The notes under the pieces are model-generated. The model searched no databases. It worked only from the letters and a program-made list of their open reading frames with translations, and was not told the origin of the DNA. DNA of 63,465 nucleotides, filler included, from Cercozoa sp. M6MM (Eukaryota > Protista > Endomyxa: Ascetosporea), in NCBI GenBank assembly GCA_040357565.1. It is 15 parts of 15 records of this genome, joined end to end, with 100 filler letters (N's around TTAATTAATTAA, not from the genome) between each part and the next. Parts side by side here need not be neighbours in the genome. Positions count along the whole stretch, not along the records: positions 17,220 to 21,926 come from JBDODJ010001071.1; 14 more parts are not named here. One strand, given 5' to 3'. Shown here one piece after another: positions 17,120 to 22,026 of the stretch; positions within the stretch are counted from its first letter, which is position 1, and each line of letters opens with the position of its first letter. Position numbers and translations under genes: made by a program.

Positions 17120-17324
17120 NNNNNNNNNNNNNNNNNNNNNNNNNNNNNNNNNNNNNNNNNNNNTTAATTAATTAANNNNNNNNNNNNNNNNNNNNNNNNN
17201 NNNNNNNNNNNNNNNNNNNGGGGTAGGGGGGTAAAGGGGGTGGGGTAGGGGGGCAAAGGGGTGGGGTAGGGAGTAAAGGGGTGGGGTAGGGGGTAATGGG
17301 AGGGGCGGGTAAGGAGGGCAGTGC

Positions 17325-19999
17325 CTTTGAGCAGCAGGAAGGAGTGCTGCGAGTCGAGATCGTCGGCGTCGAAAACGCGCTGCACGCTGCCGTGACACAG
17401 ATCGATCAGAACGGGACGGTTGTTCCGATCAGTGATCGCAGAGTGATCAAAGTGATCGCCACGTGACACGGTATCAGTGACACCGTCATTGGCACCGTCA
17501 CTGGCACACTCGCACGTCACCTCGTCGCACGTGTCCGTGGCCACTGCGCGCGCGAACTCCTGCGCAGACACGCCCTTAACAAAGAACAGGGGACACGTGC
17601 GCAGACACTGCGCAGTACCTGGACCGACGCAATGATGCGCACCGTGCCGGGTGCCGACTCACGGTGTATCAGCCACTGAGTCACAAGGTACCACACCGGT
17701 GCAAGAGGTACCACAGCACACAGACAGGGAGTACCCGCAGTGCCGTGTCGAGGTGCCGCACTTCCCGCGTGTGCTTCTGGGGGAGGGGTAAGGGGGAGGG
17801 GTAAGGGGGTAAGAGGAGTAAGAGGGGGGTAAGAAGGGGGGTAATAAGGGGGGTAAGAAGGGGGGTAAGAAGGGGGGTAAAACCTCCGACACACGCAGCC
17901 GACGCGCCAGAGCGTCGGACACGCGATCGACGTCGTCGTTGACGAGGCACGGCACACCGTCACTTGGCACGTGCGCACTCGTGGGGTCACTCGGGTGGTC
18001 ACCTGGCACGTGCGCACTCGTAGGGTCACTCGGGTGGTCACCTGGCACGTGTGACACCTGGTGTGACACGTGGTGTGACACGTGCGCACTGCGGCCTGTT
18101 GCAACAACACTCGTGTCGACGTAGACGAGCACTTCGTCCTCGCGGACCAGCAGGTGCGTGACCTGCGGGTCAATGTTGACAGTGCGGTCACTGCGGCCGC
18201 TGTCGTCCGCGCGGACAGCGGTGTTGTCCACGTCGATCAGCACCGGCACTGCGCTGTCGCGAAATGTCACAAGTCGCGCCAGTCGCACGCCACGTTCCGG
18301 CACGCGACTCTGGGTGGGTGGAGGGGGGTAAAGGAAGTAAGGAGAAGGGTGAAGGGTACCTGCATGCCCAGGCGTGTGCCCCAGCGCAGCAGTTGACAAA
18401 TAAAGTTGAGATTCGGATTCGCAAGCGATCGCTTCTTTCGCAGCAGCGCAAACGCCTGCACACAGAGCAAATACGCTTATTTGGACACTACTCGGGACAG
18501 GTGGACGGTCTGTTTGGACACATACCTGGTCAAAGTCGATCCGGAGGTGAAACATGAGGTAGGCGATCGCCATTGTGACACTTCTGGACACTCCTGTCCC
18601 ATACAGAATCGAATTCAGTGCAGTGCAGTCTCAACATTGCAAACATTGCCGCTACCTTTCTCGCAGTGCACTAGCACTCGTCCGCCTGAGCAAGGGGAAA
18701 AACGGGCGCTCAGCAAAACTGAACTGACACACGAATCCAAGCTTAGCTACCCTGCCGGCGGGCCTCTTCTATGAAATCGCAGAACGGATGTAGCAGGCAC
18801 AGCACATTCTCGTCGCTCCTGCGTAAAGGGTGTGACGAGACAAAACCAGAAATTTAAATTCGTGTGTGTTTTGTCGCCAAGCATGCGTGGGTGTGGCGTG
18901 GCATCAAAGTGTTTTAGCACTGTACCCACTGTCGCGCAAATCGATCGACCAGTACCTCACCGACCAGTTGTCTTCCTGTGACATACGGGAGAGTCAACTG
19001 ACATAGCGAGTAGAAACAGGAGGCAAGAATACGTCCGGCTCAGCGAAGCAGTCGCGACACACAGCACTGGCGCAGTTGGCCACGTGCGTTATCTTATGTG
19101 CCTTGAGCAAGCTCCTACAAGCACAGGCATTTAACACATTTTTCAGACATTCGCACAGGCAATACGGACAGACACACTTGTTTTCCGACGCGTACTTGTC
19201 ACCCAGAACGAGAAAGTCCAGCAGCGTACTAATGCGACCTATTTGCAAAATACTGTAACTTGAAAGTGTGCGAGTAACGCCAAACGTACCTCTGGCACGC
19301 CGCAAGGCAGTAGAGCGTCGCACCGACTCGTGTCCGTACCACCTGGAGCGAGATCGAGGCTGCAGGGGAGAAGCAAGCGTGAATGAGAAAAATACGGTGC
19401 AGTCGCACCTTACTCTATCAAGAGAAAATGGCACCGTCTGCTCAGTCCACGAGGCGTAGGACTTTGACTGATCGTTCGTCGGCCGAGTTGACACCGAGAT
19501 TGTCGGCGGACGCCATGTCTCCATCGAAACCCACAAAAACTGACTCGGTCCCCTACAGCAAAAGCGGAGCGATAACCGGGACCCAAAACCACACCACGTC
19601 CTAGTGTCCCGACTCACCTTGGTCCCAGTTTAAAGACAGCGCCTCGTGTCACAACAACAGGAAGACTCGGACTTTGATCGGGCACGTGGACGGCTCGGTG
19701 CGTTTTTTTTCGGTCGCCGATGATGACGGTTGGCCACTTTTTGAACCGCTCTTCTGGTTTCAATGGTACCTTATTGCCGCGCAGCGAGCTTCCAGTGCAT
19801 GCAAAAGCCCGCGCTCGATAGCAGGACGCCAACGGCCGTATTTCGAGTGTGCTTTTAATTTTTCTGCAATGAAGATGTGCGCTCCCGGCCACACCGTCTT
19901 GATTGAGACGCTCGCGAGTGCCGGGTGTGTACTAGGAGTTGCTGATAGTCTGGTAAGTGTGTGTGTGGTGCCTTTTGAGTCTCTATCGTTCGCTGGCAT
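17325..19999 (-). CDS. Dual-specificity MAPK phosphatase, plant MKP1-like (DSP + gelsolin-like repeats), 3' partial
   Basis: Spliced catalytic loop VLVHCEKG/VSRSVTMAIAYLM, plus ITHVANCA and ANPNLNFICQLL. The C-terminal VFDADDLDSQHSFLLL resembles the gelsolin-like region of plant MKP1. Confidence 0.88.
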
Positions 20000-20048
20000 G
20001 GCAATCTAGGTTTTTGGCGTTTCTCTGAGTGTGTTCAGCGCCGGTCCA

Positions 20049-20979
20049 ATGCCTGCGACGGCGTCATCGAGTGGCTACACACCGGTGTGCGAGGAGTGTC
20101 GCACGGCGCAGCACGTGCTCGCAGACTACCGGAGTGGACGGTGCCAAGCAGCCACACTCGTGTCAAGTGCAGTCAGTCCCTGACTGACTGAGTCACTGAC
20201 TGACTGAGTCGGTGCTCTGTGTGTGTGCTCAGATGGGTCTGCACTCACTGCGGTCTCCAGTGCGGCGGCCAGATCGTTGCCGAGGTGTCTTTCTGCCCTT
20301 CAGATGATTGTATATATGTAAATATATGTGTGTGTGTGAATATATATATATATATAGATCTAGATATATATACCTGGGAGTAGGGCAGCGAGTGGCGCAG
20401 CTTCGACGACGACAAGGGCGGCGCCGATCCTTCGCGTGTTGGTGGGGGGTAAACAGGGGGGTAAACAGGGGGGTAAAACGGCGTGTGTGATGTGGCAGGC
20501 GGACCGTCGGACGTGCTGCTGGGCGACCTGGATCTGCACACGACCATCAGCGCCGTGCGTGGTGCCGATGATGAGGTCGGCCTCTTCCTCTACCCTTCCT
20601 CTACCCTTCCTCTATCCTGCCTTTACCTCTCCTATCTTTGTCGATCCTTCCTCTATCGTTCCTGTATCCTTCCCGTACTATTCCTACATGTCTGCAGACA
20701 GGAGCATTGGAACGAGCGCACCGACAAACTGTGATGACTGCCGATGGTACCTTTGGTGGGGGGGGGGTAAGGTTCGTACCGGACGCGTGAACTCGAGGAG
20801 TCGTCCCATGTCGACAATGGTGCCGAACATGCGTCGCAGCAGTCGCTCTGTGCCACACACGCAGGAAGACATACCCCCCTTTACCCCCCCCCCGGTGACA
20901 AATACAGCGCGCGAAATCTACAAGTCCGTGCACGAGACACAGGTACATACACATTCATACCTGCCTACGTCCAGACATA

Positions 20980-21011
<32 letters not shown>

Positions 21012-21806
21012 TTATACACACCTATGTATAATCTGTGTGAACACAAAGGAACTCAAGACGACGGCCGACAAAACCGTGTCGCTCGTGATGCTTTACACTG
21101 CCGCCAACATTCAGGGCATCCGGTATCGTACATACATATGCATATGTATATATATATATATATACTTACAGATACATAACATGTATACTTACAGATACAG
21201 AACAATGTATACTTACAGATACATAACATGTGTACTTACACATAACATATGTGTGCACGTTACATGTACATGCACAATGTAGAGTGGAGTGGAAGAAACT
21301 CTGCGCACGCGCTGACGTCGAACTGCGGGTGAGTCTCCCCCCTTACCCCCTTACCCCTTTACCCCCCCCCCCACAGTCAGATATACCGGATTGCACAGGC
21401 CTTCAAAAAGGCGCACGGGAAACTCAAGGATCTCGTGCGACAGAGGTTTGTCACGCGCTGCCCCCCCCCCCCTATATACCCTCTGTTGCCCCTCCCTGTA
21501 GGAAAGTGGTGTTGCCTCGGAGAGCGGCGTCGGTGCTCGAAAGCTCCAGTTCCGACAAGTGCGTTTCTCTGCAAGTCACAGAGGGAGAGGGAAAGATAGG
21601 AGGGGAAAAGCGACACAACACACACATGTGGGTGAATGGACAGGGCCAAGAGTCACGTGCCGCGCATAGTGTCGCGCATGTCACTCAGTGAGGCGACACG
21701 GCAGGCGGCAGTGCACGTGGTGCGACGTGCCTACGAACTGCACAAGGTCGACGGACGCACACCGCAGGCCGTGGCCGCCGCCGCCATCCTGCTGGCCGCT
21801 CGCACT
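20049..21806 (+). CDS. Transcription initiation factor IIB (3' partial; one exon, 20780-20847, lies on the minus strand)
   Basis: Zn ribbon CEEC..DYRSGRWVCTHCG, B-reader GSEWRSFDDDKGGADPSRVGGP, and cyclin repeats including GRTPQAVAAAAILLAAR. Confidence 0.92.
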
Positions 21807-22026
21807 GTAGCCTCCTAATTCCTCTGACCCCTCTTTAGTCTCTTGACCCTTTTGACTCTTGCCCCGTGACCCTTTTGACTCTTGACCCTTGACCCTCTTG
21901 ACTCTTGACCCTTGACCCTCTTGACTNNNNNNNNNNNNNNNNNNNNNNNNNNNNNNNNNNNNNNNNNNNNTTAATTAATTAANNNNNNNNNNNNNNNNNN
22001 NNNNNNNNNNNNNNNNNNNNNNNNNN

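Follow-up and report, generated by a model that had tools for sequence, protein, structure and literature searches.

A TFIIB exon lies inverted within a predicted imperfect stem-loop in the draft genome of the marine amoeba M6MM, probably through an artefact of draft making

The window analysed here, a stretch of 63,465 nucleotides with filler included, contains at positions 17220–21926 one complete scaffold (JBDODJ010001071.1, 4707 bp) of the 2024 draft genome of strain M6MM. Cercozoa sp. M6MM is a marine amoeba of the Apofilosa (Rhizaria) that has since been named Lemnamoeba sinaloensis and has been in culture since 2000 (PMC13746701). The draft was produced from 0.6 ng of DNA with 10x Chromium linked reads, NovaSeq sequencing, assembly in Supernova 2.1.1 and scaffolding with ARBitR (PMC11069148), and its 2244 scaffolds are broken at simple repeats (PMC11069148, PMC13746701). 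A chromosome-level PacBio HiFi assembly of M6MM has also been published (GCA_040357565, SRX30991339); in that study, M6MM has 13 introns per gene with a mean intron length of 82 nt, GT/AG borders are found in 99.5% of introns, and the HiFi k-mer profile is >99% homozygous and was interpreted as probably haploid (PMC13746701). Both ends of our scaffold lie inside simple repeats, with G-rich TAA[G]n variants on the left (17220–17310) and a CTTGACC-like repeat on the right (21815–21926, within the intron that follows the last exon described below), which agrees with the authors' remark that draft contigs start and end in such sequence.

The TAA[G]n motif has been reported at some M6MM contig ends and also in contig interiors (PMC13746701). 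In this scaffold there are 13 exact copies of GGGGGGTAA, where 0.02 would be expected. Units of the motif lie at 17220–17310, 17780–17880, 18310–18360, 20442–20480, 20758–20770, 20871–20893, 21335–21372 and 21462–21475, in the introns of a TFIIB gene (in both orientations) and in the gaps between the coding-looking stretches of an upstream gene on the minus strand. Judged by eye, this upstream gene (17300–19300) resembles a dual-specificity phosphatase, with ..VLVHCEKG and VSRS..AIAYLM joined across an intron into the HCxxGxxRS signature. Its further upstream exons read ..FLVLGDKYASEN.. and ..KITHVANCA.., and after the gene comes a His/Ser/Pro-rich repeat region at 17940–18080.

The TFIIB gene occupies 20049–21806 in 12 short exons, 11 of them colinear on the plus strand and one, exon 6, on the minus strand, and it leaves the scaffold after exon 12, within cyclin repeat 2. 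Exons were searched singly and were concatenated solely for a local phase check; each was also placed alone, without gaps, on a bird TFIIB (P0010), and a nematode TFIIB (P0002) was used in translated searches. The exons are as follows.

20049–20140, plus strand: exon 1, with the start codon and the first CxxC of the zinc ribbon; assigned by frame and GT donor, its TFIIB homology not being significant alone
20233–20284, plus strand: exon 2, with the second CxxC of the zinc ribbon and AG/GT sites; bird TFIIB residues 31–47, score 36
20384–20441, plus strand: exon 3, GSEWR..DPSRVG of the B-reader region; bird TFIIB residues 48–66
20499–20575, plus strand: exon 4; bird TFIIB residues 68–92
20698–20746, plus strand: exon 5, ending ..TVMTAD in phase 1, with a GT donor at 20747; bird TFIIB residues 95–110
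20780–20847, minus strand: exon 6, the first helix of cyclin repeat 1; bird TFIIB residues 111–132
20895–20942, plus strand: exon 7, VTNTAREIY.., with no AG acceptor as now oriented; bird TFIIB residues 133–148
21049–21122, plus strand: exon 8; bird TFIIB residues 149–172
21283–21328, plus strand: exon 9, assigned by splice sites; bird TFIIB residues 174–188
21381–21445, plus strand: exon 10, as in our own model; its ungapped placement on bird TFIIB is ambiguous
21502–21558, plus strand: exon 11, assigned by splice sites and phase and by ungapped placement on bird TFIIB
21653–21806, plus strand: exon 12, the start of cyclin repeat 2; bird TFIIB residues 213–263

The predicted product has the features that define TFIIB. 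An N-terminal zinc ribbon is encoded by exons 1 and 2 and the B-reader/linker sequence GSEWR..DPSRVG by exon 3, which alone gives tblastn E values of 5e-6 against the nematode protein and 1e-5 against the bird protein and shares 13 of 19 residues with the latter. Two cyclin-like repeats follow, exons 6–11 tiling repeat 1 of bird TFIIB and exon 12 falling in repeat 2. Exon 12 matches the Pfam TFIIB repeat (PF00382) with an E value of 3.5e-9 and human TFIIB chains in the PDB with an E value of 4e-10, at residues 217–263 of the full-length chain. All nine introns outside the inverted segment are GT..AG and measure 52–160 nt, two of their boundaries having been set by hand. Upstream of the TFIIB start codon, at 19870–19952 on the plus strand, a short open frame (MKMCAPGH..) ends at a strong GTAAGT donor; it is out of frame with exon 1 via the nearest acceptor and could represent an exon of the 5' UTR or an upstream open reading frame.

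The introns of this gene are rich in simple repeats. Several are made up for the most part of TAA[G]n units, in either orientation. Some consist of little more than a donor, TAA[G]n repeats and an acceptor, and in its C-rich sense orientation the repeat supplies a branch-point-like CTTAC and a pyrimidine tract at the acceptor, as in intron 9 (21329–21380). Intron 3, before exon 4, carries three G6TAAAC units, and intron 4 (20576–20697) is made of short tandem CCTTCCTCTA-like units. Tracts of (AT)n and (GT)n and a TACTTACAGATACA-like unit occur in the introns at 20285–20383, 20943–21048 and 21123–21282. Long inverted repeats are formed across exons by pairs of the (AT)n tracts, which dominate a whole-scaffold scan for inverted repeats.

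In the assembled record, exon 6 is inverted relative to the rest of the TFIIB gene. The exon is 68 nt long and is read on the minus strand from 20847 to 20780, with a CAG acceptor before it and a GTACG donor after it. It also closes the reading phase exactly: exon 5 contributes one leftover base, and the end of exon 6 is in phase 0. Exon 7, which starts at 20895, is preceded by a run of C and a G, with no AG. Helix H1 opens cyclin repeat 1; in a scan with a position-specific matrix of this helix, built from 19 TFIIB/TFB homologues, the window 20848–20780 on the minus strand ranked first among the 5208 stop-free windows of the scaffold. A tblastn search with residues 67–91 of nematode TFIIB likewise found minus-strand positions 20848–20774 (E 0.028, 40% identity). 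The best ungapped placements of exons 5, 6, 7 and 8 on bird TFIIB abut one another (95–110, 111–132, 133–148 and 149–172), so that exon 6, read on the minus strand, fills exactly the slot that is missing between exons 5 and 7. A hidden Markov model of mixed TFIIB/TFB sequences, run on six-frame fragments, placed exon 6 at profile positions 112–135, before exon 7 at 133–150, with scores that are not significant. Pfam and PDB searches with the short exons, exon 6 included, gave no matches, these exons being too short for such searches. The matrix scan found no plus-strand copy of exon 6 elsewhere in the scaffold. A second TFIIB-like gene on the minus strand was also considered and is ruled out, as neither tblastn nor the HMM found further minus-strand TFIIB exons. 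The inversion had been proposed in a first-pass annotation of this sequence, with exon 5 ending at 20746, exon 7 starting at 20895 and the minus-strand exon at 20847–20780; all of these coordinates hold, and the inversion itself is borne out by matrix rank, tblastn, tiling on bird TFIIB and exact phase. The stretch of human TFIIB given there for comparison is the same as the bird sequence apart from one residue.

The flipped piece of DNA is larger than the exon, and its geometry involves two opposed TAA[G]n units:

20751–20894, minus strand: inverted segment of 144 nt, comprising, in gene orientation, the last 47 nt of intron 5, all of exon 6 and an intron 6 of 29 nt
20758–20770, plus strand: left arm of a perfect 13-nt inverted repeat (G10TAA), one TAA[G]n unit
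20881–20893, minus strand: right arm of the inverted repeat (TTAC10 on the plus strand), a TAA[G]n unit
20748–20897, no strand: predicted imperfect stem-loop in which 20748–51 pairs with 20894–97; inward of this pairing lie a 6-nt bulge (20752–57) and then the 13-bp core, and exon 6 sits in the loop of about 105 nt

The 13-nt perfect repeat had been noted earlier and is indeed part of the structure, but the proposal that its arms are the breakpoints does not hold. When only the sequence between the arms (20771–20880) is re-inverted, exon 7 still lacks an AG: a gap of 23 nt (GT..CG) remains between it and exon 6, with a frameshift if the gap is retained. Re-inverting 20751–20894 instead produces GT..AG introns on both sides, of 51 and 29 nt, with correct phases. 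The restored intron 5 consists of GTAC plus 47 nt and ends in CACAG, and the restored intron 6 reads GTACGAACC, TTAC10 and ACCAAAG. Because there is no AG at exon 7, the right breakpoint must be at the exon 7 boundary; the AG of intron 6 must then come from the left side, and since the only CT in 20749–20779 is at 20751–52, the 20751–20894 solution is unique. The existence of a canonical solution is by itself weak evidence, as one CT dinucleotide within about 30 nt is likely by chance. Flips with a right breakpoint to the left of 20862 were set aside, as they would make the C-rich repeat coding, which is less parsimonious than an intronic repeat of the kind seen in intron 9.

The ends of the inverted segment carry a 3-nt inverted microhomology (ACC at 20749–51, GGT at 20894–96), and the breakpoints at 20751 and 20894 coincide with the base of the predicted stem, which implies that the entire stem-loop was flipped, bulge included, and not merely the loop between the perfect arms. 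The stem-loop comes from a minimum-free-energy DNA fold whose overall z-score is not significant, and the centroid structure keeps only the 13-bp core. In an invertible switch, recombination between the arms would interconvert two functional states; here the 20771–20880 flip leaves the 23-nt gap.

One deposited gene model overlaps the segment:

20808–21815, plus strand: MES1915908.1 (P0001, MHM6MM_007791), hypothetical protein of 177 aa, starting at an ATG inside the inverted segment

The first 29 residues of MES1915908.1 are the plus-strand translation of 20808–20894, which runs antisense through exon 6 and the C-rich repeat before continuing into exons 7–12, and the model lacks exons 1–5 and with them the zinc ribbon and B-reader. 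Its acceptors at two later exons also differ from ours and are probably wrong: at exon 10 the site used is 18 nt further downstream, which skips six residues conserved among homologues, and at exon 12 another acceptor is used and the model then reads into the intron past 21806. MES1915908.1 is thus a faulty model, and its 29 antisense residues indicate that it was built on the inverted form and left uncorrected by transcripts. This form is compatible with a failure of transcript alignment across the flip, although it is no proof of that.

We favour a model in which the flip arose while the draft was being made, probably as a fold-back or assembly-bubble artefact, and in which TFIIB is most likely colinear in the living organism. 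TFIIB is essential, and as the exons now stand, no canonical cis-splicing can include helix H1. Given an essential gene, the integrity of all its parts and the report of a haploid genome, an artefact is favoured over a real inversion allele. The intact colinear exons, the splice sites of exon 6 and the preserved frame are unlike a long-standing lesion in a dead gene, and in a genome that is >99% homozygous and probably haploid there is little scope for carrying a null allele. The rule that 99.5% of introns obey GT/AG is satisfied only by a flip of the whole hairpin (20751–20894), and this flip ends at the stem base, as expected for a fold-back. The breakpoints thus lie at the base of a hairpin-capable repeat (20748–51/20894–97) in an amplified short-read assembly (10x, Supernova and ARBitR). 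The first-pass annotation had listed mis-assembly as a serious alternative; we agree and rank it first, above both a real inversion and programmed rearrangement or splicing.

Fold-back chimeras can arise in 10x libraries, and Supernova, which uses K = 48, forms bubbles and writes out pseudohaplotypes. From the arrangement of the two junctions, we infer an artefactual flip by the following snap-back and bubble route. With the telomere-like TAA[G]n units of intron 5 and intron 6 facing opposite ways, single-stranded DNA would be able to fold as a hairpin, and such single strands would come from the isothermal random-primed amplification of the 10x Chromium procedure. A strand ending at the stem base would prime on itself and snap back, which would generate exactly both observed junctions: on the top strand, the end of intron 6 would be joined to the reverse complement of exon 5, and on the bottom strand, the start of intron 5 would be joined to exon 7. 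If chimeric junction reads survived pruning, Supernova would form a bubble between exons 5 and 7, with the segment on one branch and its reverse complement on the other, and its pseudohaplotype output, which keeps either branch, would in this case have kept the inverted one. The case resembles the known class of fold-back chimeras and inversion bubbles in having its breakpoints at a hairpin base, junctions as from self-primed top and bottom strands, and an origin in the de Bruijn assembly of linked reads from a library made by isothermal amplification of little input DNA. It differs in that fold-back chimeras are normally rare reads that are pruned, whereas here the inverted path stands in the final scaffold. 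A literature search on small inversions in Supernova assemblies returned nothing specific.

Some observations count against an artefact. With 13 perfect bp, or about 18 bp if the bulge is counted, the arms fall well short of a K of 48, so plain graph ambiguity cannot explain the flip, and an artefact would need enough chimeric reads at both junctions. In addition, clean and reciprocal junctions that share 3 bp of microhomology also have the look of a real mutational event. Finally, the restored intron 6 is only 29 nt long, compared with 52 nt for the next shortest intron of the gene and the genome mean of 82 nt.

The first two of these points are also the main arguments for a real inversion, which we consider unlikely but clearly the strongest of the alternatives. 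Here, template switching or recombination at the hairpin would have flipped the 144 bp in vivo in one allele, in one of two gene copies or in part of the culture, a colinear copy would supply TFIIB, and Supernova would have reported the inverted branch. A fold-back switch can occur in vitro, during 10x amplification, as well as in vivo, during replication. Real small inversions typically show reciprocal junctions and microhomology, here of 3 bp, at the foot of an imperfect inverted repeat, arms this short leave no de Bruijn ambiguity to appeal to, and the strain has been cultured since 2000 (PMC13746701). Inversions at short inverted repeats or quasi-palindromes by replication template switching share the flanking imperfect repeat, the microhomology at the stem base and a bulge moved between the arms; the difference is that here the event would strike an essential gene, in a genome reported to be haploid, and the cell would have to tolerate it. 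The HiFi k-mers, which indicate a haploid or fully homozygous genome (PMC13746701), speak against a second allele. With exon 6 and every splice site intact, the inversion would also need to be of very recent origin. As for another gene copy, no TFIIB paralogue was found, and no second TFIIB of M6MM appeared in two protein searches of limited sensitivity, one of 1.84 billion proteins with exon 12 and one for homologues of MES1915908.1. The exon 12 search returned MES1915908.1 (100% identical) and distant TFIIB/TFB proteins, ten of which were checked by name and belong to other organisms; the homologue search returned MES1915908.1 alone, and a scan of JGI metagenomes with the same protein found no relative.

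Far less probable than either of these is the reading, raised in the first-pass annotation, in which the inverted state is normal and germline-like and full-length TFIIB is made by ciliate-like DNA unscrambling or by trans-splicing of exon 6, as in Drosophila mod(mdg4). Exon 6 does have its own minus-strand acceptor and donor, and an in-frame AG at 20863–64 could serve as the acceptor for exon 6, provided that the protein tolerated a proline-rich insert of 10 residues. However, that insert would fall where TFIIB homologues are gapless, and there is no AG directly upstream of exon 7. Trans-splicing of an antisense exon calls for an acceptor before every joined exon; exon 6 has its CAG, but exon 7 has only the C-run and G. 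Like mod(mdg4) and the split genes of Giardia, this locus has an antisense-strand exon with its own splice acceptor, but in those systems a common 5' part is joined to alternative 3' exons, whereas here trans-splicing would have to occur twice to bring in an internal exon, and no AG adjoins the downstream exon. The likeness to the scrambled germline genes of ciliates (Oxytricha, Stylonychia) lies in an inverted coding segment between its neighbours and in short junction repeats. Ciliate-type scrambling requires pointers at the junctions, and the 5-bp CCGGT direct repeat across the junction had been put forward as a joining pointer. It is needed only under the 20771–20880 flip; the 20751–20894 flip gives two GT..AG introns and a fully canonical gene in one step, with neither pointer nor excision. 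In contrast to ciliates, M6MM has no known nuclear dimorphism, the segment carries normal splice sites and intron sequence, and one flip restores the gene without DNA elimination. Nuclear dimorphism, scrambling and trans-splicing go unreported for M6MM in its two genome papers (PMC11069148, PMC13746701), and the deposited model shows no sign of transcript-based correction. Nothing that we found points to a programmed process.

The least credible reading is that the minus-strand exon is a chance open frame, in a gene that either has no helix H1 or uses the AG at 20867–68 as the acceptor for exon 5: the 22-residue match is weak on its own, Pfam and PDB gave nothing, and 27 of 200 scaffold shuffles reached its matrix score somewhere in the 4.7 kb, but the window ranks first of 5208 and sits precisely where the helix is missing, in exact phase and with canonical splice sites at both ends, and on each of two different TFIIBs its best placement adjoins those of exons 5 and 7.

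If the flip is an artefact, as we think probable, then MES1915908.1 is a wrong protein model, with 29 antisense residues and its N-terminal half missing. Opposed TAA[G]n units in short introns would then be a recognisable trap for linked-read assemblies, and more single-exon flips may exist in this draft. If the inversion is real, an essential eukaryotic gene would here have one of its internal exons on the opposite strand, which is rare, and inverted telomere-like intron repeats would represent a mutational or regulatory mechanism in Rhizaria. Should the inverted form, against our expectation, be the true and sole genomic state, with full-length TFIIB produced nonetheless by DNA flipping or trans-splicing, this rhizarian genome would contain a class of flippable micro-exons marked by opposed telomere-like TAA[G]n repeats in introns.
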